Position numbers and translations under genes: made by a program. The notes under the pieces are model-generated. The model saw only the letters and a program-made list of their open reading frames with translations. It did no database searches and was not told the origin of the DNA. Positions 1,944 to 55,000 of a stretch of 64,000 bases of DNA are shown piece after piece. Source of the DNA: Neoechinorhynchus agilis (Eukaryota > Animalia > Acanthocephala); the NCBI GenBank assembly GCA_051530055.1, contig CM121343.1:2450389-2514388 (forward strand), written 5' to 3'. How positions within the stretch are numbered: the stretch's first letter is position 1; each line of letters begins with the position of its first letter.

Positions 1944-2550
1944 CAATATTGGACCGTTGATATTTACGCCTCTGCCACTAACAATAGAAAACCATTGATC
2001 CAGTGCTTCTTCAACGTCTGGATCCTTCCCCTCACGTTTTCTTTTGGATGTCCCTGCCTGTCCTTCTTGTAATTCGAATTCCTTACGCAGTTGACTTTCT
2101 TGTCGTAAGACACGCGATATAGTAGATTTTGGTACACCAGTTATCTCAGCGAGCCGACGATAACTTGTATTAAACGGATGGCTTTTTATTTTATCAAGCA
2201 AGGCAATTTTATTGGTGACAAATCGTTCCTTGGCATTTTAAAAAGGGTAAATTTTTTTAAAAATACAATTGACAAAAAATAGCTTCACGCGTTGTTCACG
2301 CGGGAGGTGATTGGTAATCGAATGTCCGCTGCACCGGCTTGGATGTAAAGGATTGCAAATGTGGATATGAGGCCGCCACGGCTTTATAAAAGGCGGGAGT
2401 CGGGTTCAGAAAGAAGCCGTCTTTCTGGCTTTCCCGGGATTTAGGAGGGGGTTGTGTTTGTTTTTCCGCTGCAGCGGCTCGGTTAAACCAAAACTCAGTA
2501 AAAACAAAATCAGTTAATAGATATTCTACTGTACTAAAATCTTAAATTTA

Positions 2551-2677
2551 CTGTCTCAATTAAGCGGAATGTTGTCCCAATTAAATATACAAATTTACTA
2601 TTGGTTTCTTGGTTTGGTTTCACCCAAATAAGCGGCTGTCCCGATTAAGCGGTGTCCCAATTAAGCGGAATCTACTG
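2551..2677 (-). repeat. Tigger terminal inverted repeat plus subterminal TGTCCCAATTAAGCGG-type repeats
   Basis: Variants of TGTC(C/T)C(A/G)ATTAAGCGG occur at ~2552, 2574, 2637 and 2653, next to the CAGTAG terminus. Confidence 0.85.
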
Positions 2678-2826
2678 TATTTGTATCTGGTTCATTGATT
2701 TTTCCGGAATCGTTAGAAATGTCCATTTCTTCATTAGTACTCTGATTATATGGGTGTCAGGTCTTTGGTCGAAGCTACACCTTCCTTACCATTAATTTGG
2801 ATGGTGAAATAAAGAAAATTAAGAAT

Positions 2827-2868
2827 TTATCAGAATTTTCGACCAATGCGTTGGTCTTCTTCAGTGAT
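2827..2868 (-). ncRNA. Minimal type I hammerhead ribozyme (PLE-associated)
   Basis: Minus strand reads ATCA-CTGAAGA-A-GACCAA(CGCA)TTGGTC-GAAA-ATT-C-TGAT. It has an intact core, a 6-bp stem II, a palindromic AATT stem III and stem I ATCA/TGAT, and lies ~18 nt past the GIY-YIG stop. Confidence 0.85.
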
Positions 2869-2885
2869 CTGAAACACACATGCAA

Positions 2886-4290
2886 TTAGTCTGGATTGAG
2901 TTTCCACTCTTTCACCACAGCTTTAAAGGGTACACGTAAATTAAGTGTGTAGTCCGCTTTGTTATGCGTGGACGTGTTGCCGTGTTCAATCATGATGGCT
3001 TCCATTGTGATTCGATCACGTTTGTTGTCACATCTCGCCATTATTTCAGTGGCATCAAGATCAATTCCATGTTTGTTTTCTTTAACATGATGAACTAATG
3101 CTGAGTTGAGATCGGTCAACTTGCTGATGGCCCGTCTATGTTCGGTCAGCCTTCTTCGGATGTTATTGGTTTGTCAAATAAATGATTGGTCACAATCGTT
3201 ACAGGGTATCCTGTACACACACCCGGAGACCCCGTCAACCCTTCTGGATCGGAACATGCCATCTAAGGTTCCCCCTTTTTTGTTAGAAACCGTCACTTTT
3301 TTTCTGTGAGTCCTGCTGCTTAATGAGATTTTGCATCTTCGTGTTCCACTGATTGTCTACATAAGGGATCTCAATGAATCTTTTTTGGACTGCCTCGTTA
3401 TTCCGATTGTTCAATTTTATATATTGAGTACTTCTCATCGTTTTTTCACTGAGACCCCCCGGATAACCACCAACTTTCAGCAATCTCCAAATTGTGTCAA
3501 GTTCATTCTCAAGAACATCTTCATTCGAGCAATATCTGTATGCTCTCAAGAACATGGACCTCATTCTGGAGATTTTATATTTCGTCAATTGCACTGATCT
3601 CCAAGGGACGACGTTATGTGGAACTATCTCTTTTCGATACACTGCAGTTGTGAAACCACCATCCAAATTTCTATTGATCATCACGTCGAGGAAGGGTAAA
3701 CTCTTGTCGATCTCCTCTTCGCATGTCCATTTGATATGCTGGTTCATCCCGTTAAGCTCTCTGTTCAACTCCGATATAGTAGAAAGTTTGGTGTTGAGGA
3801 TAATGAACGTGTCGTCGACATATCTAACCCATAGCTCAACTCCCTTCAATTTCGACAGGTGTGTTTCCTCCCAGTACCTCATATAGAGTTCTGCTAATAA
3901 TGGGGAAAGGGGGCTACCCATCGCAAGTCCATCTATTTGATCGAAATTCGTGCCTTCGAATTCGAAGTTTGAGAACTTAGTGCAGAAAAGCAGTAATTGA
4001 CGCCACCCGTTGTTAGACAGCTTCCATTCTTTGCAATTCTTCAACAGTAAAATGGCTAGTTCAATCACCTCTTCAACTGGAACCTTCGTGAACAACGATA
4101 TGACATCCGCAGACACCATTTTGCAGGAGTCATTGATATTCACTTTTTTCAGTCGATTAATCAGAACAACCCCTGATGAAACAGCATGGATGGACGGGAG
4201 AAGGAATCGTTTCAGGAGACCGGATAGAAACTTGGACAGTTTGTAGTTGTACGAAGAGTGAGCAGCTATGATCGGCCGTGCTCTAATTTC
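2886..4290 (-). mobile_element. Penelope-like element: RT plus GIY-YIG endonuclease, 5'-truncated and frameshifted
   Basis: RT motifs MVSADVISLFTKVP, DGLAMGSPLSPLLA, WVRYVDDTF and SLPFLDV; GIY-YIG region VYRIPCNDCDQS...SALVHH...MEAIMI. Confidence 0.93.
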
Positions 4291-8539: not shown

Positions 8540-9070
8540 TCTACCCCAACGACTGATTCTAGCTATGAATGAACTTAAGGCATCATGAAGTTGGACAGGG
8601 GCAAAGTATTCTGCATAATAGATGAAGACCACTGCCATAGGATGGCTGCGGATATCCTATCAGGTCCAAAGTTCCGATCTAATGATGAATGCCCCCTATG
8701 AAGCGAGAATAGATGTTCAATCAATTCTTACTAACGCTGAAGAAACGAGGAAGTATTGATCATGAAATATATTAAAGACATTGATCCAGAAAAGGGAAGA
8801 CACCGAATATGTACTTATCGGACAAAATACATAAGTCGCCATTAAAAGCACGACCAGTTATTGCCTCACGTTCTGGATACCACACCAAAACATTGGCTAA
8901 CATGTTGCGAAATTTAATGCCGGCGGATAAGCACATCGTATCATCGGGTCCAGAGTTCCTGGAATGACTGAAGGCGCACGGCAATAAAGAATATAGAATG
9001 GTTTCTGCTGATGCCAAGTCTCTATTCGCAAAAGTGCCATTGGACTCAGCGATCAACCTTGCGGGAAACG
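8540..9070 (+). mobile_element. Penelope-like RT N-terminal fragment
   Basis: KLDRGKVFCIIDE (ADKG-like motif), ARPVIAS, MVSADAKSLFAKVPLD. Confidence 0.75.
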
Positions 9071-11793
9071 AAATAATGATTTCGATCCAAGTCCCTTGGC
9101 TGTTACAGCCCACAAGGCGCAAACGCGTAGCTTATACATCCATAAAAAAGACTGCATTTGGAGTTCATTTAAACACAAAACAGACTGGGTTCCACTATAT
9201 CATAAAACTGGATGCTTTATATCAGCTTTGTGAAATGGAACACAACAATGTGACTGAAGAAAAATCGAAGTCTCCTAACTCTGTCAAAACGCACAAGAGA
9301 TTCATTAAGTACGCGGTGGATAAAAGACCGAGTCTAAACTAACATTTCTTCGCTCACTCATGCAATAGAATGGCATACGACTAACTTATGAATTGCTGGT
9401 CTCTTGATGAAATGTAATTAAAAACCTTATCTTCTGAAAAACAAAATCTATATTGGCTTCACGACGCACATGATATTAATCTTTGATATCGATTTCATTG
9501 CACTGAAAAACTATGCAGTATGGTCATGTTTACAGGTAAATCTTAGAATTTAACAAACCTTTTGGTGTCTTAATAGTATATTGCGATCTCAAGATAATAG
9601 TCGCCTGAGTTGTTACATTGACTTAACGACAATCTTTAATTGTCAAAAAGCTAAAGGCTACAAATTTCCCGATTCCAGTCAACTCGAACTTTTAGAACCC
9701 CCTCGCGATTTCAAAAATCAACTTATCGTTGTAAATTGCACTCTAAAATTTTATACATTTTTTCGAATATTACAAAAATGAACAACAACTTTGGAACAAT
9801 CTTTCAAACACTTCATCTATTGGTTCCTCTTAATAATTTTACAGACCATGGTATAATTTATAGTTTAATTAACAACGGTTTAAAAAATCAAATAATATTA
9901 AAGCATAGCAGTGTTCGATCATATTTCAACTATTCGTGGAACTTAAATGACTAATTGAAGTGTTCACGGAGCGAATTTGTGGAGATAAATTCCGATAACC
10001 ACTTGCGAGTCAATGATATGACCGACGGTATTTTGATTCTCAAACTCCATTCACCTTATCTATCAAGAGTAGCATTTGTAACCGTTCCAGCATTTAAAGG
10101 TGTGCTGCATATACCATTTGACCGTTTATCCAATCAAATAATCTCGGAACACGCCAACTAGATAATATCTCCTTTGGACGTTTGAATGGGCATTGGTCTC
10201 ATAGGTTTCTCTGCTCAGGATTATTATTTTGCAATGGCCATTAAACCAGGGAATTTACTAAACTTGTATTTATCGAATAATTCAATAGTTTGTAAATCCC
10301 TACGCTCTGTATTTACATTTGAAGCAACGGCGAAAGGATAAAATATAGATTATGCATTTGTACATATTTGGTGAACCTTTTAGTTGACGGACGTGTTTAA
10401 TATTTCTAGATGCACACGTATTCAAATCGATGATTATATCGCATTTAGAAAGCAGTAACAATTACGAACATGATCAGGAACTTCGATTTTCCAAGTGACC
10501 GAATATATCCGGTAGTTAAACTCCGCCTACTCAACAGCACCCAAAAATTCGCATTAAATTCCATTGGTAAATCCCGCAAATCCAGAAATTGCAATTCGTT
10601 CTATTCTAATCGGATGACGTTGGCTCATGACTTGTATAATAATAAAATCGACCGTTTTGATTAGCATGTTAAATCCGAGGAATGAGTGAAAATAATTAAA
10701 AATACAATGGTACAACTTTTGAATTGCTATTACAATATGCGAAAATTTTAAACGTAATATCAACAGCATTTACTAAATCGAATATTTGGCTAATTTTACA
10801 AATCTAGTTTTAGAACTTGCTAACATTAGCAATGACGCTTTCTTATTGCTATCTTTTCAGTAGATTTCGACAAAGTTTCATGACCAAATGGAAGTTTAAG
10901 AATATTTCCGAAACGGGAAAGTGCTTTGACAAAGTTCTAGATCCTCATGTAACTTGGGATTCTCTGAATAAATAATTCAATTTTCAATAGATAAAATTCG
11001 TATTTTAAAGGAATTTAAAAAAAGGGTTAAACTTTGTGATACGGCTTAGACGATCATTTGGACGTAAATACATATCCAAAGGTTGTTTTAATACGACGCT
11101 AAAGTTCCATAACCTTACAAAGTTATCGATTGTCGACAATACCAAATCTAACCCCAGGAATACTAATAACTAAACCGAATATCGTCCAACCGCTTTCAAC
11201 TACGAGACTTAATGTATCTATAAACTATTCAAGTTATACGAATCGCATTTTGCACAGCTTAGCCATAAAATTTCTCACGGAGACTGCTTTTATCGAACAA
11301 ATACAGAGCGGCTCGATTGTTGATCTAAAAATGTCCCATTATTTTTTAATCTTTTTTAGCGAAATTTAAATGCTGTGGGAACGTATCACCCCAAAAAAAT
11401 TCTGGAGCACCGTGGATTTTAATTGAGCGGCCGCAAAGTAACTATAATTCAATTAAAACCACTCTTGACTTCGGTTTCTTAAAAGCGTTTTTTCGTACCG
11501 TGAGGATTAATGATTTAGTAGGATAATGTGATGCAAGTCTTCAGCTGATTGACTCTTTTTATTTCACACAAGTGGCCAGCGACGCATTCGCCATTCGAAG
11601 TATTAGCGGTGCTATTCCATCAGAACAATGCTCATTTGAAAATTATTAACTTAACTTATTAGATGTATTTAATAATTCTATTTTTTTCACATAGAATTAT
11701 TTCGTGAGTTGCGTGTTGTGACGATGCTGAAAATAAGGATTTCGGAATACTTAAACAAAATATGTCAGAAAAATATATTTTTAAAATTTATAG

Positions 11794-12447
11794 TTAATCT
11801 TTGTTTTCTACAGAGACTTTCCGTCGGCTCTGATCTTTTTTGTAAATCTTCATTAATTCATCCATTAATTTATCGATTATTCCTAATCTTTTGTGAGCGT
11901 TCTCGTTCATTTCCATCAATTTCGATAAATTCTTTATTTCGTTGAGCTCGAGCAAACAGCTCTTCAGCGAATCGGAGGGCATTTGGAAACTAAAGTGATT
12001 ACTTGTTCGTTTCATTAATCGCTTAACTCGTTTTTCCGCCTGTATAACATCACTAAAGAATTTCTTATGTAACATAAAGCTCTGATAAATTGCGTATTCG
12101 CGAGATGCAATCTTATAAACTTTACAGGCGATCGGCGTGTTCTTCGAATCTACTGCCACTTTACGTAACTCTCTCAAATTGTCGTCGATTCGAACTTCCA
12201 ATTCTTGGGTCTGTACAGAATCACCGTTGTAAAGAGATAGATCGTCTTTTATTGCAACGATCTCCTTCTTTATCAGGGCAAGTTTTTTTCGGGTTCGTCT
12301 TACAAGACGTCGGGTCTTTGCAATCTCATAGTACGGTGACTGCTCCCGCCTAGCTATTTCCGAAACCAAACTCATGGACGAACTTTCGTTTTGTTGATTA
12401 CATGGGTTCAGAAGTCGAATCGTACTGGATACCTTAATTACCATCAA
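11794..12447 (-). CDS. Hypothetical basic coiled-coil protein (217 aa), no family recognised
   Basis: Uninterrupted 651-nt ORF in very AT-rich DNA with heptad-like L/I/K/E composition. Confidence 0.4.
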   Translation of the reverse strand: MMVIKVSSTIRLLNPCNQQNESSSMSLVSEIARREQSPYYEIAKTRRLVRRTRKKLALIKKEIVAIKDDLSLYNGDSVQTQELEVRIDDNLRELRKVAVDSKNTPIACKVYKIASREYAIYQSFMLHKKFFSDVIQAEKRVKRLMKRTSNHFSFQMPSDSLKSCLLELNEIKNLSKLMEMNENAHKRLGIIDKLMDELMKIYKKDQSRRKVSVENKD

Positions 12448-12789: not shown

Positions 12790-13300
12790 GCATAGATTTT
12801 AACGTAAACATTTTGAGATTTTTTAGTTACCCACAGGAGTTAATAATATATTGGGATCGAAACATTTTTACTATTAAGATGACCCTGAAAAAAAATACTT
12901 TTATCCGAATAAACGAGTCCCTCAACGTTCTCCTATTTCACCAATTCTATTTTGCTTAGCATCGCAATTCGCTGCCATATCAACTTTATCGTTCTTTTCG
13001 ACTATCCGCGGCGAACAATTTCTCAAATGGGGCTCTCTCTAAATCAGAAAAACAAAATTTATTTTGAAATCAAAGTCCTTGGTAGGCAAGCGTAAAAATC
13101 GCGAGTTTTTCGCCGAGATCCTAGATCTCTCGTGCCCACCACTCCATAAAAGCTTAATCTTTTGGGTTACACTTTTTGTGGCGAACCTTACAATCAATAA
13201 CGACTTAAATAAGATGAAAAATTGCTCAAAGCCGCCAAAATAGGCGCCCAACGGGCACTTTAGCTTGGCTTAGACGACAAGGCGATCGAGAGCTTTTAGA
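12790..13300 (+). mobile_element. LINE RT remnant (same family as 7470-7692)
   Basis: About 75 bp nearly identical to 7612-7692, then RVPQRSPISPILF (a QGSP-like motif). Confidence 0.7.
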
Positions 13301-19696: not shown

Positions 19697-20062
19697 AAAA
19701 ATGACAAAATGTTTGTCATTTCTTCGATGGAAATAGATGCGTTTGGAGAATATCTTCATAATGAGACTGGATCACGGGTTGCCTTGGAATTCTATCTTGC
19801 CTGTCAGGCGATAAAAACTATACCGGAAGATGACGAGTCTATACGAAAATCTGTGAAATCGACGTACCGATTATTCGCTAGGAAATATGTGAAGACCGAT
19901 GCAACCGTTGACGCCGACAATTACGTTAGTATGGAAACTTAGAAAAATATTAACTAGGATATAGCCGTAAAGAAGATTGGTTATCGTGAAATGTTAGAGC
20001 CTGCCGCTCAAGAACTTTCCTATGTGATTGATAAGCATTTTAAGAACTATTTGGCTTCCAAA
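19403..20062 (+). pseudogene. Axin-like RGS-domain gene fragment, with an in-frame TAG at 19940 and truncation by an integrase fragment
   Basis: TPANLNKSSDLYELIN...DAFGEYL...LEFYLACQAIK...ARKYV...MET*KNI...LEPAAQELSYVIDKHFKNYLAS follows the RGS fold pattern and most resembles Axin RGS (by-eye comparison). Confidence 0.7.
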
Positions 20063-20069
20063 GGACGAC

Positions 20070-20425
20070 TATCAGATTCACTTTCATGCGCCCGTGCCTT
20101 AATCAGCAACTGGATCTCTCGTTTTGGGGTCCCGAGTGATATAACCTCCGATCGAAGATCTCAATTCACTTCGCGAATATGGGCCGATATGTCTCAATTA
20201 TTCGGCACAAAGCTGCACCACACTGCAGCTTATCATTCACACGCAAACGGTATCGTCGAGAGGATGCATAGACACTTGAAGGCATCCCTGAAAGCCCGTT
20301 GGAAAAGCCCGAACTGGATGGACGAACTCCCGTGGGTAATGTTGGATTTGAGGACCTGTCCGAAAGTCGATCTGGGAACATTTTCTGCGGAACAAATTTA
20401 TGGCAGTCCACTCAAAGTGCCACAC
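20070..20425 (+). mobile_element. Ty3/gypsy integrase core fragment (different family from the flanking ones)
   Basis: WISRFGVPSDITSDRRSQFTS...AYHSHANGIVERMHRHLK. Confidence 0.9.
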
Positions 20426-20429
20426 ACGT

Positions 20430-22021
20430 AGTATCTTGCCAAGCTTTTCATCGCATTACACCCCGGATGACCTTCATGTAGAGCAGTCAGCGTTGATTGT
20501 CTTAATTCGGCAGGAATTACGACGCGACTGGACATCATGACGACACCGCCTTCTACTGATAGTTCGCTTCTACGGCTCAAATAGATTTGCAGCGCCTTCG
20601 GGACTTGGTTGGGTTAATCATTTTCAACGTACCTTCGAACCTGCATCAATTCTGCATCCTTGATCGTCGCTTTCTCCAACGAAGAAACGGAAAGCCCGGT
20701 GTTGTTTCGTATTCCGTCTTGAATAAGATGGATCGTGTCGACCGCTTCATCTTCAACCTCCATCCTTGTGGTAAAGCGCGATAGAATATCTGCCAATGTA
20801 TTCTCCTTGCCTTTGATGTGCTTTATTCGATAATTATATTGGGAAAGCAAAATCGCCCGACGCACGAGACGATGATTGGAGATTATCTGTAAGTTTCGTT
20901 GCTCCCCAAATATATGTATCAGCGGTTTGTGATCGCTCAGTAGGGTGAACTTGCGCCCTGCCAAGTAATAACCGAACTTGGTTACACCGAACACCAGTGT
21001 AAAGGCCTCCCGATCAATCTGGGCGTATCGTTGTTCAGCTGAACGTAGTGTTCTCGATCAGTTAGCCACCGGTTTAAACGGTCCTTCCTTAGTCTGTTTG
21101 AGTAGTACAGCTCCCAACCCTGTCTCGCATGCATCACACATCAACTGGAGGGCACTTTTACCATCGTATGAGACTAGATCCTGGGCGTTGACTAGAGCGT
21201 CCTTGATTGTATTGAACGCGGTGTCGTGCTGCGAACTCCAGTGCCATTCTGTCCCCTTCTTCAATAGGCCATAGAGGGATACACATTTGGACTGCATGTG
21301 CGGTACGAACCGTTCGATGTAATTCATCGCTCCAAGAAATGTGCGTAGTTGAGATACTTTGGCAGGAGTTTGAATTGAACGTATTGATTCTATTCTGGCA
21401 GCATCGGGCTTGATCTGATTCGCTTCCAACACGTGACCCGGAAAATTCATTCTTTGTTGCAGGAATGCACATTTCTCCCGTTTCGTTTCGCTTTGATTCC
21501 TGCTTTCATCAATCTGGCCAACACTTCCTTAAGATTTTCAAGGTGCTCTTCATCGTTCCATCCCGAAACGATTACATCATCTAGATAAACGGATACGCCA
21601 GATATTCCCTCCAATAGCTCGTTCATATATCGCTGATATATCAGCGGGGCGACTGAAACTACAGAGGGCAATGTACGATATCGGAAATATCCGATAGGAG
21701 TCGACACGGTCAATAGGGCCCTCGAGTCCGGATGAATCGGCATTTGCAGATAAGCATCCTTTAGATCAATAATGGAGTATTTTCCCCTCCAGCGATTTTA
21801 TGCACCACCTCTTCGAAAGTTGGCATAATGTACGAATCGGTTCGAAGGTAAGGATTGATCGTCGCTCGGAAATCGCCACATATACGCAGGCCTCCTCTCT
21901 TTTTTCTTACGATGACCAAGGGAGTGGCCCAATCTATTGCTTCACTCGTAGCATTCACCGGATCTAATACATCAGACGCGACCATTCGATTTATCTCGTC
22001 TCTCACTTGGTCATGGAGCAT
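20430..22021 (-). mobile_element. Ty3/gypsy (Mag-like) pol: RT, RNase H and integrase zinc finger, frameshifted
   Basis: WATPLVIVRKK/RICGDFRATIN, VYLDDVIV, LMCDACETGLGAVL, SDHKPL, LHEGHPGCNAMKSLARYYV. Confidence 0.95.
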
Positions 22022-22119
22022 TATCGGTATTCTTCGCGAGGGCAGGCATCGAGAAACCGCCTTTTACACAGAAATATCTTTGCTTGAATCTCCCTCAAAT
22101 ACACTGGCTTTAACCACAT

Positions 22120-22515
22120 AAGTGACAACGCGACCGAAAAACTGAGGCGCCTCAACTACCTCGCTCCAAATCTTTTGCTCTACAACAAACGAGGCGCATC
22201 CATTGCGGGCATTCTCAAAAGGAAAACCAAGCAAGATACCAAATCAGGGATATACAAAATCCCATGTGCAGAATGCCCAAAGGTCCACATTGGACAAACC
22301 ATGCAAGGGATCAGGAAACGAATTTCGCAGCATAAACAAGCTTGCAGGACATTCGACAAATCCTCAGCAATCTCGAACCACCAGCAAACAATCCAGCACA
22401 AGGTGGATTTTGAAAAGGCGAGATTCATAACCAGCGAATCGGATCTTAGAAGAAGACTGATTCTTGAGGCCATTCACATCCGAGGAAATCCGACGATGGA
22501 AGGCAATAAATCATT
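22120..22515 (+). mobile_element. Penelope-like element 3' part (GIY-YIG endonuclease)
   Basis: SGIYKIPCAECPKVHIGQT...SAISNH...RLILEAIHI. Confidence 0.92.
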
Positions 22516-22660
22516 GCATGACGGGCAAATTAGTCGGCAACAAACCGCAAGAGGTGTGTGCGGATGGAACTCCCCACACTTCGGGTATTATCAAACCCGT
22601 GGATCTGAGCTACATCCAGACGTGACCGGCTGTGCATGCTGTCTATGTCCTCCATTTTAG

Positions 22661-22702
22661 ATAGACTGAAGAGGCAAGGAAAACCTTGCGAAATATTTCT
22701 AT
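22661..22702 (+). ncRNA. Minimal type I hammerhead ribozyme (PLE 3' region)
   Basis: ATAGA-CTGAAGA-G-GCAAGG(AAAA)CCTTGC-GAAA-TAT-T-TCTAT. Confidence 0.85.
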
Positions 22703-22841
22703 AATAAATGAGTAACGAAAACACCGGGGGCAGGATTCGACACCGCACAATTTATGAATAAGTTCAAGGAAGCCACTCCATGGTCCCCGGGATCTCCGCT
22801 GTATTGGGTCGTGTTCTCCACCACAATTAACCGAACCTTTC

Positions 22842-33690: not shown

Positions 33691-34278
33691 ACGCAGATCC
33701 ATGGACTGCCGAAAAACTCGGTCTGCATTTAAGAAAAACGCTGTTGTCAATGTTACTGGACTAACCGGCATCTTGTATTCATTTTGACCGTTGGGTACAT
33801 TCCGAACACTCGCAACGGTTCCTTCTTTTCAAATATCTTGCGGCTATCACTTTACGAAACATGCTTTTCAACTTTTTGCGCTTCAATTCTCAATCATCCT
33901 TCGATTCCATCATATATATAAGCCGATCTCGCAGTATTTTCTGCATTTTGATCTCTTATCCACCTTTGTCAATCGAAATTAAATCACCGCCATTATCACT
34001 CAATGAACGTAATATTGTGATGTTTTATAAAGCTTGTTATAGTGAAGAGAGATTTGCGGAGTACAAGAAAATGCCGTCAAAAGCTGCTATGCACCATCTT
34101 TAATGATGAAATTTGTACTACGGGCGATCCCAAAGGAAAAGATAAGCGACTCTAAGGTTAAAAATCACTATTCTATAGGCTTCATGATTGTTTCTACAAT
34201 TCTATTGCTTAACGAAAAATTTAAAAGGGGCAGCTAAAAATGAACTATGTAATATCGCGATTAATAAAACGGGATATT

Positions 34279-34518
34279 TATAATTTTAATGAACATACTC
34301 CCGGTCATAACCTATTCGATTTTGATTTATTGGAAATATTTCGAAGGAGGTAATCCCGCCTCATCAGTCATTGTTTGCAAGCTTTTTTCAGAAAAAAACA
34401 AAAAAAACGAAAATACTTGCAAACAATGACTGATGAGGCGAGGTTACCTCCTTCGAAATATTTCGATTAAATCAAAATCAAATAGATTATGACCGGGAGT
34501 ATGTTCATTAAAATTATA
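34279..34518. repeat. Fold-back inverted repeat (103-bp arms, 34-nt loop); each arm carries a degenerate hammerhead
   Basis: 34279-34381 is complementary to 34416-34518. The right arm reads CTGATGAG-GCGAGGTTACCTCCTTC-GAAATATT. Confidence 0.92.
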
Positions 34519-34682
34519 CTTTGACTTACCCGAAGGATTTTCTATCAATGAAAACGGGATATAGCGGATCAAAGATTTTAAAATCATTTTTTCTATAAAA
34601 AATATGTTCATTTTTGTGTTCTTTTTTTAAAGCAAAAGTTTTTTTAAGCAAGCATACATAATTTATAGTTTCTTCAACGCTC

Positions 34683-35490: not shown

Positions 35491-36537
35491 GTGGCAAAGA
35501 TCAAATCCTTCACTGATGTGCCTGTGATGAGAAGAATAGATATTGATTTATTGTTCTCAATTTTTCGTGCGTTTCGTCGGACCACAGGCCTAAAACGTAG
35601 AGGTAGGTCATATCCTGAGTTTGTCTGTAATCAAACGCGTTTCTTTCGTTTATACAAGTTTTCAACTGCATAAAATCGACTGCGCACTTTGATTCGTAGT
35701 TTCGAAACCGTTGTCGATTTGCTCTTTTCTGGGTGTTTTCACAAGAGTTCGAGCATTTCGGCTTATTAACCTAAGCATGTAAATTTATAAATGGATATTT
35801 GGCTTTTAATTGTACTTTCAATAATTCGATGTAATCGAACAGATCTTTATTCTCCTGGTCCCGACTTTCACGGGCATGAAATAACATTTCATTTCCACTT
35901 CATGAGTTACAAATCCCACTGTGAACTTCTTTTCCAGCATAGAACACCGTCGCTTTTCCATTGCGTACAATTCGGATATAAAGTCCCCTCCTATCTTATC
36001 CGGGATACTTCGAGGTAGCCTCCTCCTTTCATAGCACCAAGAAACTCGAATTGATCAGACTCCGGACCACTCGTTGATTGTTGTTATTAGAAATCGATAT
36101 TTTTATTAGACCATTTTAAGGAATTACGATCACATTCGGTTGCAAGAGGGCGATTGAAAATGAAAATCAGGTTCAGTGATTCTTACCGAGATTTATTGAC
36201 TTCTTTCGAGAAATATATCTCATTGTATTTGACATGAATTGTAGGTCTATCGTGCTTTGATATCAGTGTTTCAGCCTCGTTATTGCCCACTATCACCTAT
36301 TCGTTGTGTCCTCCGTGCAATCTACTTTAGCCGTAATCGTAATCTTTTTCAGTTTACTTCGAGCATAACCACAAGTCACAAATCTCTGATTAAAAAGCTC
36401 TTTAAAACCAAAATGTCGATAAGTGAGCAGACTGGGTAAAGACATAAATTACATTTCTTTAATAATCGATAAAAAAATCCTTCGGATTAGTCAAAGTGTT
36501 ATTTTGGTGATAATAGTCCCGGTACTAGCACATTTGA

Positions 36538-36587
36538 TTTTTAGAAATATTTCGCGAGGTGGCCTCGCCTCATCAGTCATCTAAAAA
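36538..36587 (-). ncRNA. Minimal type I hammerhead ribozyme (PLE 3' region)
   Basis: Minus strand reads TTTTTAGATGA-CTGATGA-G-GCGAGG(CCA)CCTCGC-GAAA-TAT-T-TCTAAAAA. Confidence 0.8.
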
Positions 36588-36686
36588 ATAATATGTTTTT
36601 CTTATTCAGGTTTTGAGCTCGAGTGCGCGGGATCGCCAAACCCGAAGTTCGGGGACCAATTATCCGCTCGAACCCCCTGCGATATA

Positions 36687-37100
36687 CTACGTTTTTTCCA
36701 TGATTTTGGTATTGATTTTTAACACGTCGCTGGTTGGAAGTTTCAAGCTAAAATTAGCTTTATTTCCTTCCATTGTGTTAGACACAGCGATGTGTAAGGC
36801 CTCCAAAACAAGACGTCTTTTTAGGTTTTTCTCTATTTCAATGAAGTTGGTGCCACCAAAATCTGCTCGATGCTTGCATGTCTCTTGATGATTCGAAATT
36901 GCGGACGAATGCTCAAATCGACCGCAACCTTTCTTACATTGAGCGACCCTCTTCTTGGTGCCTTGCATCGTTTGTCCGATATATACTTTCTCACACTGTT
37001 CACAATGAATTCTGTATATCCCATGAGTCGGCTCAATTCTACCCTTTCTCTTGAATGTGCTTCTGAGCGCGATTCCTTTAGTATTGTATAGACGAATTCC
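36687..37100 (-). mobile_element. Penelope-like GIY-YIG endonuclease fragment (related to 22120-22515)
   Basis: HGIYRIHCEQCEKVYIGQTMQG...SSAISNH...RRLVLEALHI...MEGNK. Confidence 0.92.
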
Positions 37101-39386
37101 ATCCTTCTTACTCATAATGAAGTAAATCATTTGATTCGTGTTATCATCAATGAAGTGCACTCTTTCGGAGCATACAGGCTCTGCAGGCGATTTTTTGTTG
37201 TTATGCGGATGGTAGTTACACTCTCGGATTCCCCGGTCCATAATACCAGCATTAATATTCTCGTAGACGTTATTCCTTAATACGTATTTTACAGCTGATA
37301 TCTCAAATCTGTGGAAATCACTGCGTTCATCTTTAAAATCCTTTAAAAGTAACCGCTCAATCGATCAAAGGTTAAAATAATATTCGAACGGTGATGTTGT
37401 CTTTGTTCAAAGTATAATCGTCCCCTGCAACCAGAGTCAATTGTCGATTTTGGTGTAATTAATCGCTATTTGTATTTCTTGAGTAAGATTCTCTTTAACA
37501 CAGCAAATCATCGGTAGTGGTGATACTTTGACCTCATTCCTCTAAAATCTTCTCTCAGTTGGAATCTGAAATAATCTCAAGAGTTGACAAGCAAAAGTTG
37601 TATCGTATCGCAATTTTGGAAATGTTTATTTCCTTTGGCCGCATTTTTTGTGATGGAAGTGTTCTTTGTGAATCCATAAATAATTTATTTCTAATATAGG
37701 AAGTAAAAAATCTATATTTCGAATGCATCCGTTTAATCCCAAGATTAACTCTGATGCTCGACAAGGAAATTTGTACATTGGGACTACTTCAACCGCTTGC
37801 TTTATAATAAAAAATATATTTGTTCCACTAACAAAGTGTTGTTATAGGGTTGAATTAATCAAATCTCTGAGTCTTACGAAATATTGATACGCTTTTGATA
37901 AAAAGGGTTCAAATGTCCAAATAAAAATATGCGGCGAATTTTACAAGTGAAAACTTAAATTCTGCATTTTCTCCAATATAAAAATTCGAGTTTGTGAGCA
38001 TTGATATTTTTCTGAATTTAGGGCCGTACATGAACATCTTTTTAAAAGACGAAGTATTTCCGTATTAAAGTTTTCCGCCATCATCCGCTTACTGAAATTG
38101 GTTTGAAATACATTATTTAAAGAGAAAAGATTATGTTCATAGTTTTGATCTATTACTTTTCTTATAAAAAACATTCTAAACGCTGAGTCCATTCCATTTA
38201 AATTAAAAATGTTATTAATCATTGTTCGTATGACCCATCCGAATTCATGTTGTACTTCGAGCACCGCCTAAATTATCGTCGTATTCACAGTTACGTTTTG
38301 CAAAGAATTCCTGATATTTTCTTTTGTTTGCAGCAGAAATTGAGTAGTGAGTTATCTAGAGATCATCTTACAAAATTTAGCCAAATCGTCTTCCTTTCCA
38401 ACAATTGTAAACGGAAGCGAAATTTTTCGAATTGAAAAATCGATCGAATTTTGTGTAGTCATCGTCCTCTTGAAATGCCTTTAGTTCCAAAGTATTCAAG
38501 ATCTTTTAAAAAATTCAGGGATCGAAATGAAATTCAATCATTCGCTCCTATAGAAAGTCACAACGTTTGTGATTGTCAACTATCACACAGAAGCAAACAA
38601 TACTAATCACATCGACTAATTCAATTAGAATAACTTCGAATTTTCTTTAACAAAGTTTCTCATGAACATAAACTGCATATTTTAAATCGTGTTTCTCTTG
38701 GTTCGGTTTACTACTCGTCGATAATCCGAATGCACACAGAAAACTTTTCGAACATTTAATAATCCGTCGTAATCTTCAATCGAAGTATAAATTGTCGATA
38801 CAACTAATTGGAGCATTTGCATCAGTCCATCAGTGTCAAGTTCATGGATCTAAATCTGATGTCGAAGCTCCGACATGATTTATCAAGTACTGTTTTCTAA
38901 CAAATTTTCTTATAAAATGCTCTCCATATTCAAGACTTTAGAACTCCACGCGCTACTGAATTCTCAAAAGACCAAAATCCACTTTCATCCGAAATTGTTT
39001 CAGTGTATCCTTCGACAAGGATGAATTTCCGTTATGCATTGTCCATAATCAATTCATTGTAACTTGCCATACTCAAATGTCAACAACAAGGAATGTTTCC
39101 TAATTTTTAGAGTGATTGAAGGCAGCTCCATAACAAACATCCTCAAAGTCATCTCGCGATACGATCATTGTCCGTTTTTATATCTATCTCAAGTCGACAA
39201 TTTTATTATATAAGAAGAATTTTGAAAATGCTAATAGAAAACATTAGGGATCACTGATGAAAAGATTTATACACAACAATCTTAAAAGTGGCTGCTACTA
39301 ATTAAAATATCGCTAAATTTTTATAAAAACAATCCATATTGATCCATTTTAAAGGAAACACGGATTAAAATTTCCTAAGATATTCT

Positions 39387-39860: not shown

Positions 39861-41134
39861 CGAATAGACTTGAAGGTATTTTGAAGAGAATGTCGAAAAT
39901 GAAACTTTCGCCGAAATTGGAGATTGGTCTAAATATTTCGCGAGGAAGCCTCATCTTATGAGCCATTGCATCTAAGGTTTCTACAATCACATCGAAATCC
40001 GGGATTATGATTTTTCTCTCTATGATTTTCATCAAAATGGATTTTAATGATTATCAAGACATATTTGTCAAGCAATGTTTGGGTTTTAGGTAGATGTCGT
40101 TTTAGAATTAAAAATCCGCTGGACATAAATATAGATTTTCACTTGCTTCTTTTATAGCGAATTTTTTATCATTTAGTGCGATCACGGAGGAACGGAGAAA
40201 ATTGGTACTGAAAACAGCAATAAATTCAATTTTTCAGCGGTCACTTAAATTGAAATCAATTTTTACGAAAATTAAAAAAGAAGTCATATAGAATTGTCGT
40301 CGGGATGAATTTGATTCCCGTTCGGCGGAAAAACATCGCCAAACTCGAATAAAAAAGAAGTGTTAACATTTTCGATACAAAATAAAAAGCTTAGATGCAA
40401 TCAAAGGCTAGATCAGTTCAAATAGAGGCATTCGAGGATCTTTAAAATCGAATAATTTTCGAAAGAAGATTGAAAAGCTAAGTGAATGGATGTCCGGTTA
40501 AATTAATAAAAAGTTATGAACGATTCGTTGAACCTGTCACACATTTGAAAAACCCGAAGTCACGGAAAACAAAACAAATTATTAATGGCGAAAATATTAC
40601 GATGGTTATTAAGATCACGGATAAATTTGGTATTCGATTCGCCCTTCAAACTTCTTAGTAAAATTTTGACTGAGAATATCCTGAAATTTTCTAGCGTTCA
40701 ATCGAGTATCAAAGTTCAGGTTTTGTACTTTTTGATTTGTTAATGGCGGAAAAATTGAAGGGATTTAATAAAATTCCTTAGAAGTGCTTGTCTATTTCAA
40801 AAACACAGCTTAAAGACCGTGAAAATCTCGACACGATCCGAACCTTGAAACACGATAATGACCTTGAAACGTGGTAGACGGCTGTGTGAGTATTCTCCTT
40901 GTTGAGCGCAGGTCTTTCTCCGTGTTGATGGTTGATTGAACGAAGCCAATTTCGAAAGTAGGTTTTCAATATAGGAATCGTGTGATCGCAACCGGAAAAT
41001 TGATTTTCTTAATTTATGACGCGCAAAAGACATTCTTCCAGATATGGCAAAAAGTATGCGGCAAAATAGTTTTCTGCAGGTATCCCCAGGGAGCTGGGAT
41101 TGTGCATCTGTGTAATGTTTTGCTCAGCATAATG

Positions 41135-52008: not shown

Positions 52009-55000
52009 ATGAGTTCGTTTGTCGGTAACGTCAGTGGGGGTGGTGGATTGGATGACAATGAGGAGTTCTCTGAACCCAGAAAGGCGATGGCAGCTCTTGA
52101 ACTCCTAGAGGAGCACTACCAGAGTTTAATAGGTCCTGATAACGATGATCTTCGGTCTGCTATCGATCGTTTGACGTCAGTTTTTAAACGGCGGTTGTTT
52201 AAGGCCCTTCTTGACATTCGGATTTATTGTGAGACGATATTGCAGGATCCTGGATGTGATCGGAGCAGTAAGACTGCAAGAGCGCACGAGTTAGCTGATA
52301 AATGGGAGCGGTTATGTCCAATGCAAGCTACAGCTCATAGCACCGTACCGGTTTCTTCTATGAAGTCAGCGGAATGTCTAGTTAGAAATCAGAACACTGA
52401 TCTTTACAGTGGACTCGAGGAATGCGAGTTTATAGGCGATGATCCCAGTACGGTCTCAGCTAAGGACTATGCGGATCATTGGATGATCGAAGATGTAATT
52501 CTAAACCGAGAAGCAATGCAAAGATCAATATCTTCTTCTTCTACCTTGAGTTCTTCAGGGCTTGGGTTTAGCATAGCAGGTGGAGTCGATGCTCCTTGTA
52601 TACCAACGGATAATTCCATATTTATAACGCGCATCACACCGCAAGGCTTGGCTCACCACGATGGACGCCTTAGAATGCACGATATTATTTTGAGGGTAAA
52701 CAATGTGAGTTTTATCAATATAACCCACTCGAATGCGGTTGAGACACTGAAAAGATCGGGAGGTGCCGTGAGTTTGCAAGTTAAGCGTCTTGCGCCTCCA
52801 AATGTGGAACAAATCACTTTGAGTAAAGATGCGTGCCGCCAAGTAATGGCCTTCGAGCACATCCATCGCCACTATCATCACGTCGAATCTCTTAGCATGG
52901 AAATGATGGGTTTCTGGATTCATGGTGGCATAAACAGCGAAGTATTTCCTGGTGATCATGGAGTTTTCGTCCAAAAAATTAAAAAAAAGAGCAGTGTAGA
53001 TATGGACGGAAGGTTGAAGCTCGGAGATAGGCTGCTAATGGTCCAAACCGACAAAAACGACTACGACCTCACCTTTGTTGATTTTAATCAAGCTGTTGAA
53101 TTCGTCAATCAGGCTTTGAACGAGATCAGTGACACTGTGACTCTGGTGGTGGGACATATTACGAACGCTAAACGAATTGCTCATGACGATACCAGTGGAG
53201 GTGGGAAATTTATTTCTTCTGTTAGCCATGGTGTGCGAGCTGCGCCTGTGCCGCCTGGAGGTGTAAGACGAATTCAACTAGAGAGAAGTCGTGGCGGTGG
53301 GTTCGGTTTCAATATTGTCGGCGGAGATGGCGGTGAGGGGATATTTGTGAGCTTGGTTCTACCTGGTGGAGCTGCTGATCTTAATGGTAAACTGCGCCGT
53401 GGTGACCAAATCCTGTCTGTTAACAATATCGACCTACGATTCGCTACACACGAGGATGCAGCTCTCACGCTCCGTAATGCCGGTCCCAGTGCGCTAATTA
53501 CGGTAAAGTATTGCCCCAATCAACTTTACTCGTTTGACGATAGAACCAGTGTTTGCGATGAAGATGATTTCATCAGATCGAATGACCAGTGGCAAAGGCA
53601 CAATGGTAGTTTGACCGGTGGATTGATGGGTCATCACAAAGCACCCGCGCCCTCTTCTCATCATTCGACGCTGGTCGGAACCAATAGGCGTCGCCGTCAG
53701 TTCTACATTCGCACTCATTTTGACTATGATGCTTTCAAAGACAGTGGCTTGCCTGGCCGCGGCCTTAATTTTCGAAGAGGAAATATCCTCCATGTCACTA
53801 ACGCTGCTGATGATGATTGGTGGCAAGCCCGGCATGTCGATGCGCTAACCGGAGTCGAGGACGATCATGTGGGGATAATTCCCAGTAGAAAAAGGGTTGA
53901 GCGAAAAGAACGAGCTAGCCTTAAAAAGGTAAATTTTTCCAAGTCCACTGGGGGGAAAAAAGTATGGAAAGGAAAATGTCTTCTTCGATGGGACGAGTTG
54001 GACTAAGACATTTGCCTTTTCAAAGGACCAATAAATCTTCGCAGTATGTCACCCAGTGGAATAGGCGCTTTGGAACGAAGGAAAAAGAAAAGGTTTGGAA
54101 TCTTCGGAAAGGATAAAAAAGAGATCCATTCTGGCGATGAAAGTGAATCTAACGACGCTCAAGATGGATGCTCCAGTAACACCACACTTACAGTACCCGA
54201 TGAACATCCAGTCATTTACGAGTACGTGAGTCGTGTTGATCTACAGTATACACGCCCAGTGGTGGTCCAAGGTTCGATGAAGGAAGAGATCAATGAGTAT
54301 TTGATTCAAGAGATGCCTGATTTGTTCGAAGTTTGTGTTCCGCACACGTCGAGGCCGAAAAACGATAATGAGGTGGACGGTAAGGATTACATTTTTGTTA
54401 GCCAAGAGGAAATGGAATGCTTTGCTAAAAACAATCAATTTATTGAATGTGGCGCCTATGATGGAAATATGTATGGCACAAGCATCGAATCCATTAAGGC
54501 CGTCGCTAACGAGGTACAATACCTAAATTGTATGCACAAATGTCCACTTTATCGCTATTTCAATCCATTTGGCGTTTCAGCTGCGTTCAAATGTATCCCG
54601 TATACTTGACGCACAAGTAGATAATTTAACATCGGCACTTTTTGGTTGCAAATCCGAATCCATTCGTTTTGTTCTAATCATCACTTCATCATTTGACCAT
54701 TATTTTTACATTCACTTTGAATGTTATTTGCAAATACACGGCTGCCAAGCCAAAATACATAAAAAAATTGAGTGATAGGTTTTCGGATTTGAAATTCGCC
54801 ATTTCGTCGACAACTAAATGCGATATGCATTTCTCTTTATTTTATCTCAGATTGAATATTTGATTGAAACGCTTTCGTCAAAATTCATTTTGTTAGAAGT
54901 GGACATTGTAGGCGACAATTCTAATATCTATAACGGAATCAATTTTCCTCGACGACTTATAATTTGAAGGGAAAGCACTGCGTACTGGACGTCAGTGCGG

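Follow-up and report, generated by a model that had tools for sequence, protein, structure and literature searches.

A putative RNA structure overlapping the C-terminal coding tail of Penelope-like elements, upstream of their hammerhead, in Neoechinorhynchus agilis

Results

Two fragments of Penelope-like elements carry a shared block upstream of a hammerhead

The stretch of DNA analyzed here, called the window, comprises 64,000 nucleotides from the genome of the acanthocephalan Neoechinorhynchus agilis (assembly GCA_051530055.1). It harbors two 5'-truncated, frame-damaged fragments of Penelope-like elements (PLEs), copy A and copy B (Table 1). Copy A, in which Pfam detects a GIY-YIG domain and which is matched in tblastn by a 745-aa A-family ORF used as the query, shares 87-93% identity with a single unit of the tandem A-family array at locus L037. 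Copy B represents a second lineage, and the nuclease remnants of the two copies share 48-52% amino-acid identity. A strict search pattern (GCGGA..TCCCC...CTTCGGG..CCCG) has two matches in the 64-kb window, against an expectation of 0 in shuffled sequences; both fall in the block studied here, which in each copy is preceded by the remnant of a GIY-YIG nuclease ORF. The initial annotation had described this block as a conserved, covarying two-hairpin RNA motif in the 3' UTR of the two elements, and the sequences it quoted at 22547-22611 (+) and 36616-36680 (-) were verified letter for letter. Its placement of the block 40-55 nt upstream of the hammerhead core agrees with our measurements of 54 nt (A) and 39 nt (B) from the end of the block to the CUGANGAG core.

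Table 1. Features of the PLE fragments in the window and of the proposed fold
Feature	Position	Strand	Content or basis
Copy A, A-family PLE fragment, 5'-truncated	22082..22751	+	blastn/tblastn, Pfam; end of the RT linker, GIY-YIG nuclease, C-terminal tail, hammerhead and first ~45 nt of the next unit
Ancestral tail frame, copy A, 53-aa ORF open to TGA 22623-22625	22464..22625	+	ORF list, comparison with the L037 ORF
Block, copy A	22545..22611	+	codons ...PQEVCADGTPHTSGIIKPVDLS in the ancestral ORF frame; covariance model 94 bits
P1 of the proposed fold, copy A	22545-48/22599-602	+	closing helix CCGC/GCGG
Hairpin 1, outer stem, copy A	22551-58/22575-82	+	
Hairpin 1, inner stem, copy A	22560, 22562-64/22571-74	+	loop 22565-70
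Hairpin 2, copy A	22583-86/22595-98	+	loop 22587-94
Type I minimal hammerhead, copy A	22652..22708	+	core pattern, sequence, ORF start right after the hammerhead in L002/L037
Parts of the copy A hammerhead (predicted)	22652-22710	+	helix I 5' strand 22652-65; core CUGAAGAG 22666-73; helix II 22674-89; GAAA 22690-93; predicted cut after 22697; helix I 3' strand 22698-708; ATG of the next unit 22708-10
Copy B, GIY-YIG nuclease ORF remnant, second PLE lineage	36687..37241	-	
A6 run in which one extra A would explain why the nuclease frame reaches TAG	36692..36697	-	frame comparison with B2, B3
Block, copy B	36616..36682	-	...SQGVRADNWSPNFGFGDPAHSS in the frame that runs uninterrupted from 36718 to TAA 36604-36602; covariance model 69.7 bits
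Hammerhead, copy B	36535..36590	-	core CUGAUGAG 36576-36569; helix II 36568-54; GAAA 36553-50

[quoted passage not shown] RVT_1 and GIY-YIG were both found in the 745-aa ORF, and its homologs carry PF00078, PF28514 and PF26215. The array at L037 has a unit of 2565 bp, with matches to the block at 10274, 15451 and 18016, plus one in inverted orientation at 12824; inverted PLE pairs occur at 34278-34550 of the window and at 9567-9975 of L033. Both window copies carry a type I hammerhead, with CUGANGA and GAAA on either side of helix II at 22666-22695 (+) and 36576-36548 (-) and with complementary flanks that form helix I; the helix assignment and cut site given for copy A in Table 1 are predictions that follow standard hammerhead numbering. 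With the Rfam model Hammerhead_3, copy B scored 15.8 bits, below the gathering score of 48.5; the likely reason is that helix III is very short in minimal hammerheads. In the A family, the ATG lies ~10 nt past the predicted hammerhead cut of the preceding unit, and the distance from the stop codon to the next ATG is ~85 nt. In both copies the block is no part of helices I-III or of the core, as it lies upstream of the helix I 5' strand and lacks the core boxes.

Inserted copies end at one of two sites, either in an AC-rich loop that follows the hammerhead by ~50 nt, as in copy A, L034A and L002b, or ~30-45 nt further, as in L001, L002a, L002c and L003. Copy A, which ends in ...CGCACAAT inside this loop (22727-22751), is thus of the short-tail form. 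The block is situated 130-170 nt upstream of the 3' ends of the copies.

The block is the end of the ORF

The block had been assigned to the 3' UTR, between the GIY-YIG stop codon and the hammerhead. Comparison with intact relatives contradicts this placement. An intact 826-aa A-family ORF (L037:15616-18096) reads through the block in frame (...TMEGNKSNHTLVLPMLRSMTGKLVGNKPQEVCADGTPHTSGISKPADLSYTQT and stop), its TGA lying 12 nt past GAGCT, with 42 nt left to the core of the hammerhead, and the annotated proteins P0001, P0002 and P0007 have the same C-terminal tail. In copy A no stop codon precedes the block, and a 31-nt deletion near 22515, evident as a blastn alignment that is 31 nt shorter in the window, cuts the tail frame off from the nuclease frame. 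In copy B the nuclease frame does end ahead of the block, at TAG 36689-36687, while a second frame runs uninterrupted from 36718, through the block, to TAA 36604-36602 (...SISQGVRADNWSPNFGFGDPAHSSSKPE and stop). As judged from the frames of its relatives, this shift would be due to one extra A in the A6 run listed in Table 1. A programmed +1 frameshift at ACG UAG U in copy B was considered and rejected, since a 1-nt insertion in a dead copy is the simpler explanation and the A family needs no frameshift. The block therefore seemed noncoding because both window copies are dead, frame-damaged fragments. In the lineage group of canonical EN+ PLEs formed by A, B and their relatives, it makes up the final ~22 codons of the sole ORF and encodes a C-terminal tail behind GIY-YIG, and the unalignable spacer that follows the block is the true, short 3' UTR.

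Two further lineages related to B, named B2 (L036:6600-6700 (-) and its partner L005a) and B3 (L038:4590-4745 (-)), extend this comparison. The nuclease frame of B3 continues through the tail (...TTPGVRADMRPAYPSHTIPNNI and stop), and that of B2 reads ...HCRVFRAGAHGPRTVD...; the tail peptides are PGVRAD..PAYPS in B3, RVFRAG..GPRT in B2 and QGVRAD..PAHSS in frame f0 of copy B. A tail peptide of the form (Q/P)(E/G)V(C/R)AD ... PA(D/H/Y)xS is common to the related lineages A, B and B3, in which its length changes in frame. The tail shows about 50% amino-acid identity, equal to that of the nuclease domain, and the nucleotide identity of the block between A and B is 44/68 (65%), compared to 58% in the nuclease coding sequence. 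Because the tail peptide is conserved like the nuclease domain, much of the nucleotide identity of the block is, on these sequence comparisons, accounted for by coding. These observations favor the possibility that the block is conserved for its peptide only, in which case the hairpins and their base-pair changes would be incidental or would stem from hairpin-templated (template-switch) mutation in a GC-rich stretch.

Complementary arms are retained between copies A and B

RNAalifold analysis of the two copies predicted a Y-shaped fold of 20 pairs, made of a closing helix, a bipartite hairpin of 8 bp plus 4 bp and a second hairpin of 3-4 bp. Eighteen of the 20 A-derived pairs are kept in B, including two double compensatory changes and one change of A-U to G-U, and G-U pairs occur in the fold of the sense strand only. 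The two pair swaps are as previously described: the arms GTGTG/CACAC of copy A correspond to GTTCG/CGAAC in copy B, i.e., G-C is replaced by U-A and U-A by C-G. Likewise confirmed was the description of the loops as unrelated while the stems are kept, as the loops between complementary arms have different sequences and vary by ±1 nt in length. Paired columns are identical at 31/40 positions and unpaired columns at 13/28; such retention of the arms while the loops are randomized speaks against an explanation by coding alone.

Other properties of the fold point in the opposite direction. When copy B was folded alone, a different structure was predicted to be ~8 kcal/mol more stable, and the proposed pairs had approximately zero probability in its ensemble, as might be expected were the fold incidental to coding. 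In addition, the folding z-scores against dinucleotide shuffles were weak, at -0.94 for copy A and -0.14 for copy B.

Pair retention and codon choice point to constraint beyond coding

As a control for pair retention, 67-nt windows of the adjacent nuclease coding alignment were folded in one copy, and the pairs kept in the other copy were counted (n = 179). Pair retention in these controls was 0.54 ± 0.11 and did not exceed 0.77 in any window, thus staying below 0.90 throughout, compared to the 18/20 in the block. On the other hand, at least two compensatory double changes were found in 56 of the 179 control windows (31%), so the two swaps alone are no evidence of structure; they are moreover adjacent and possibly arose in a single event. 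The covariation score observed was reached by 13-16 of 500 shuffles, with two covarying pairs that both come from the single contrast of A versus B. Of the features first noted, the kept stems thus exceed chance, with a pair retention above all coding controls, whereas two compensatory changes do not. Null models that treat positions as independent gave P = 0.001-0.008 for the pair retention, and P rose to 0.2-0.3 when bases were randomized at the varying columns only, a result that coding alone would accommodate.

We then considered silent positions. Among codons specifying the same amino acid in A and B, the third base is identical in 9/11 in the block versus 25/58 in the nuclease domain (Fisher p = 0.02), where silent sites of A and B are near saturation (37% identity at third positions; 6/17 at 4-fold sites). 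The middle segment of the block in copy B, TCCCCGAACTTCGGGT, lies in a different reading phase from that of A, owing to one additional nucleotide in loop 1 and one fewer in loop 2, and yet is identical at 14/16 positions. Should these loop indels represent damage after insertion, the argument from reading phase lapses, and it is the silent-site argument that then carries weight. When synonymous codons were drawn at random for the B peptide, a mean of 12.0 of 20 pairs was kept, compared to the observed 18 (P(>=18) = 6e-5), with the shared ancestry of A and B as a caveat.

The A tail by itself has a lower minimum free energy than its synonymous recodings, with z-scores of -2.77 under the codon usage of the ORF and -1.83 under GC-matched recoding (p = 0.04). 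This z-score is the lowest of 68 windows of its own ORF, the controls averaging +0.38 ± 0.81 with a minimum of -1.42, which makes the tail the most structure-biased window of the ORF; these tests on A alone are partly circular, as the structure was chosen after the sequences had been seen. The end of the ORF has a G+C content of 60%, compared to 42-50% elsewhere in the A ORF. Altogether, the results moderately support that the nucleotides of the block are constrained beyond coding needs. Pair retention, silent-site identity, codon choice in B and the structural bias of the A tail all weigh against the coding-only explanation, which we consider possible but doubtful.

The full fold occurs in two lineages of N. 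agilis

To place the block among its relatives, we compared the window with a further ~142 kb of N. agilis sequence, taken from the surroundings of seven annotated proteins derived from PLEs. Nine further copies of the block were found (L001-L003, L034 and L037), all of the A family and with nearly identical arms; because every other copy with the full fold is a near-identical A member, the data amount to one contrast, the A family versus a single B copy. Within the window and these loci, the full fold is present in two independent lineages only, A and B. The block is deleted or scrambled in decayed A copies (L002b and L034:12934-12973). B2, also a decayed copy, has GCAGGG, TTCGAGC, GGTCCCCGAAC and CGCACTC in common with B and carries unrelated AU-rich sequence in the place of hairpin 2. 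B3, decayed as well, has a version 24 nt shorter, in frame, in which half of both hairpins is missing. The failure of both lineages to keep the fold, with a recognizable peptide in B3, is in line with a block conserved for coding only.

The initial annotation had proposed a covariance model and a search of Rfam as checks. A model built from 7 copies and run with filters off over the window and the ~142 kb of loci recovered only the A-family copies and copy B, and left B2 and B3 undetected. In the distant PLE families of the same genome (window ~2600-4290 (-), L005b and L004b) the block is absent, and the hammerhead lies ~25-60 nt from the stop codon. It is also absent from the closest outgroup elements, which come from other samples (L035 and L039). 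Protein homolog searches returned 7 N. agilis relatives, and every other PLE match was <=33% identical. The block fits no existing Rfam family. Rfam 15 gave 0 matches at the gathering score over the whole window; at E<=10 it gave nothing over block A and, over block B, only chance-level matches to Afu_298, mir-345 and c4-a1b1, at 11-19 bits versus 40-65. ARAGORN found no tRNA-like gene. Pattern scans of metagenome and viral contigs yielded 25 + 2 matches, none with a hammerhead downstream or a stem 1 arm upstream; these matches, on contigs of 45-73% G+C (most above 55%), are probably due to chance and the contigs prokaryotic.

Two other candidates were set aside. A likeness to a Pol III B box (GGTTCGA in B) is absent from A. 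The idea that the block engages in conserved long-range pairing with the hammerhead or tail was likewise not borne out, as RNAduplex was uninformative and a UGUGCG/CGCACA match in A is missing from B.

Discussion

A possible signal for splicing or transcription of the next tandem unit

The end of the ORF might serve at the DNA level or in splicing, as an internal promoter of the next tandem unit and/or as the 5' part of a Penelope-type 5'-UTR intron. In Drosophila virilis, Penelope is described as having a pLTR that harbors the transcription start site along with a 75-bp intron in the 5' UTR; this intron overlaps the promoter, and its 3' end coincides with helix I of the hammerhead (PMC8557442, PMC4209133). 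The block of N. agilis resembles this intron, as it is described there, in its place within the tandem unit, directly upstream of hammerhead helix I, and in that a GT...AG pair could be placed around most of it. With exon boundaries marked by a slash, an intron can be drawn in copy A from GAG/GTGTGT (22554) to TTTTAG/ (22660), so that stem 1 begins with the donor GU, and in copy B from GGG/GTTCGA (36673) to TTTTTTAG/ (36581); in both cases this is a matter of sequence compatibility. A, B and B3 share a GT...pyrimidine tract-AG arrangement, and even outgroup L039 has YTTTAG ahead of its hammerhead. The gene model of P0003 at NCBI appears, when read against L003, to end an exon at KQKE, which corresponds to GAG/GTGTGT; that exon was not recovered by tblastn. 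Finally, only ~85 nt separate the stop codon from the next ATG in the A family, which requires that the promoter of the following unit be located in or near the end of the ORF.

Several features weigh against such a signal, which we regard as unlikely. The peptide is conserved in frame beyond the putative donor, from which it follows that the unspliced form is translated; the intron of Penelope, by contrast, is described as lying in the 5' UTR, and in the N. agilis block it is pairing rather than sequence that appears to be conserved. The donor of copy B (GUUCGA) is poor, and TTTTAG is already accounted for by pairing in hammerhead helix I. A promoter would be expected to keep sequence and not pairing, and would not favor G-U pairs of the sense strand.

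Proposed recognition by the reverse transcriptase

RTs of many non-LTR retrotransposons recognize 3'-terminal stem-loops at the start site of reverse transcription, e.g., in the R2 3' UTR and in stringent-type LINEs such as UnaL2. Like these, the block would be a small conserved RNA structure located close to the 3' terminus of the transcript of a retroelement. The initial annotation suggested an RT/endonuclease recognition signal, taken here as one for target-primed reverse transcription. Unlike the R2 and UnaL2 stem-loops, it lies well upstream of the 3' ends and is missing from many copies that were successfully inserted, as many of them are 5'-truncated downstream of the block and were nonetheless reverse transcribed (window 34278-34550 and L033). 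Distant PLE families of the same genome do without it altogether.

Comparison with the Poseidon element PAc of Anolis, the only PLE studied in vitro, argues further against this role. The minimal active RNA of PAc extends from +20 to +172 of the ORF, and reverse transcription starts in an AC-rich stem-loop downstream of the hammerhead, with two internal start sites and an optional tail (PMC11167929, Frangieh et al. 2024). All of the RNA that is required, and the RT start itself, thus lie downstream of the hammerhead in PAc. The N. agilis elements have an AC-rich stem-loop of their own downstream of the hammerhead, as does PAc, and both of the alternative ends of their copies are located there, one of them in the AC-rich loop. 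Since the 3' ends match the PAc mechanism, the part recognized by the RT is most probably downstream of the hammerhead and not in the block. By this analogy, supported by the dimorphism of the tail, we consider an RT recognition signal in the block very improbable. What the two would have in common is a cis-acting PLE RNA structure inside coding sequence near the hammerhead; that of PAc is found downstream, where it falls within the first ~170 nt of the ORF and serves as the start site of reverse transcription, whereas the N. agilis block is found upstream, in the last ~22 codons.

A probable RNA structure at the end of the ORF, next to a minimal hammerhead

We favor dual use of the block, in which a C-terminal coding tail and an RNA structure overlap, a reading that we hold to be probable but unproven. 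According to this model, the sense-strand RNA would fold into a compact Y consisting of a short closing helix, a long bipartite hairpin and a short hairpin, and ~12-15 nt would separate the end of this domain from the stop codon, and 40-55 nt from the hammerhead core. What the constraint maintains would be the pairing of the PLE transcript, in cis. In the version that we prefer, the structure would lock the GC-rich end of the ORF in local hairpins, such that it does not mispair with the weak minimal hammerhead or with the downstream stem-loop at which reverse transcription initiates; it might perhaps also offer a docking surface for the protein of the element. A role in cis, putatively as an insulator or a protein platform, is proposed because PLE minimal hammerheads are weak alone and the hammerhead of PAc needs protein. 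Minimal hammerheads of PLEs cleave poorly by themselves and are thought to require a partner or helper (PMC4209133, Cervera and de la Pena 2014), and cleavage by the PAc hammerhead is assisted by protein, occurring only with the protein present (PMC11167929).

A bolder and rather improbable form of this model takes the Y domain as an obligatory accessory of the minimal hammerhead. As a protein dock or a folding chaperone in cis, it would switch the ribozyme on. Termination of translation, which occurs 12-15 nt downstream, would thereby be coupled to the processing of the RNA and the assembly of the RNP. If so, the near inactivity of PLE minimal hammerheads on their own would be explained. The block adjoins a weak minimal hammerhead, and in this it resembles the periphery of stabilized type I hammerheads; it differs from the known stabilizing contacts, between loop II and a bulge of helix I, in being a separate domain 40-55 nt away.

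In agreement with the view that the motif is not a described PLE element, no structure upstream of the hammerhead was found in the PLE literature searched. Should the structure prove real, no conserved RNA element would have been described before it on the upstream side of a PLE hammerhead, and it would provide a handle on what this hammerhead is for and why its cleavage needs help. It would at the same time be of a familiar kind, a cis-acting RNA structure over the end of a retroelement ORF, present in these data in one lineage group of one acanthocephalan genome. If the structure is not real, the block is the ordinary C-terminal coding tail of a lineage-specific retrotransposon. In either case the two window copies illustrate a practical point, namely, that the true end of the ORF is easily taken for UTR in PLE pseudocopies.

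3' ends of PLE copies

Copies of the A family, the Penelope-like element (PLE) family of window copy A, finish at one of two alternative end points some 30-45 nt apart (window 22727-22751; tails at the other N. agilis loci L001, L002, L003 and L034), one lying within an AC-rich loop (...CGCACAAT) and the other after ...GACAATGATATATGACA. These paired end points have a counterpart in an Anolis PLE, for which two internal RT start sites are reported. A tandem array of the family on N. agilis CM121342.1 includes an 826-aa RT-GIY-YIG ORF that is apparently intact (L037:15616-18096), and the A family may still be active.

Within the window, two very short PLE tails are arranged head-to-head, and each arm starts approximately 25 nt 5' of its own hammerhead. 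An optional tail of approximately 35 nt is present on the (+) arm and absent from the (-) arm. [quoted passage not shown]

Across most of the PLE families seen, a distant outgroup among them, a pyrimidine-rich YTTTAG or TTTCAG motif abuts the 5' side of the hammerhead and forms part of its helix I. Judged by its sequence, the motif resembles a 3' splice site as well, similar to the one reported at the hammerhead of D. virilis Penelope.

Features located in the N. agilis window and at other loci (L039, outgroup PLE locus from another sample)
Feature	Location	Strand	Remark
Third PLE	window 2600-4290	-	different family, more complete
RT-like fragments	window 8692-9147	+	
Head-to-head pair of very short PLE tails	window 34266-34562	- arm and + arm	
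Hammerhead core, (-) arm	window 34337-34367	-	
Hammerhead core, (+) arm	window 34430-34460	+	
PLE tail fragment	window 40283-40316	-	34 nt
Two adjacent long ORFs	window 52009-54609	+	665 and 187 aa
YTTTAG/TTTCAG sites, window	22655-22660; 36586-36581; ~2870 (-)		
YTTTAG/TTTCAG sites, other loci	L038 ~4629; L039 ~2253-2258		
A-family tandem array	L037:12640-18230		CM121342.1, about 12.25 Mb; unit 2565 bp
P0003 chimeric gene model	L003:3001-5623		PTH2-like exon, PLE fragment, downstream exon

Other PLE remnants and gene models

The third PLE is 36% identical to the A family in its RT and 28% in its nuclease; its hammerhead core, near 2835-2865, follows the stop codon by about 27 nt, and the 65-base, probably hairpin-forming block at the ORF end of copies A and B is absent from it. 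A match to the pattern CUGANGAG...CGAAAUA at 11935-11967 (-), inside a 217-aa ORF and without PLE context, was taken as chance.

Among the gene models deposited for N. agilis are chimeric ones in which fragments of the PLE nuclease have been annotated as exons. In one of these, the annotated protein P0003, the PLE fragment stops at KQKE, which corresponds to the GAG|GTGTGT site in the opening part of the 65-base block.

Neighboring sequences

Copy A abuts, or sits inserted in, an LTR-retrotransposon-like element, whose broken minus-strand ORFs (20000-22100), recognised by eye in translations, resemble pol (RT-RNase H-integrase). Elsewhere in the window, the two adjacent long ORFs encode, almost uninterrupted, a Dlg/MAGUK-type protein (L27-PDZx3-SH3 plus guanylate-kinase), and this gene is intron-poor to a degree unusual for its kind.
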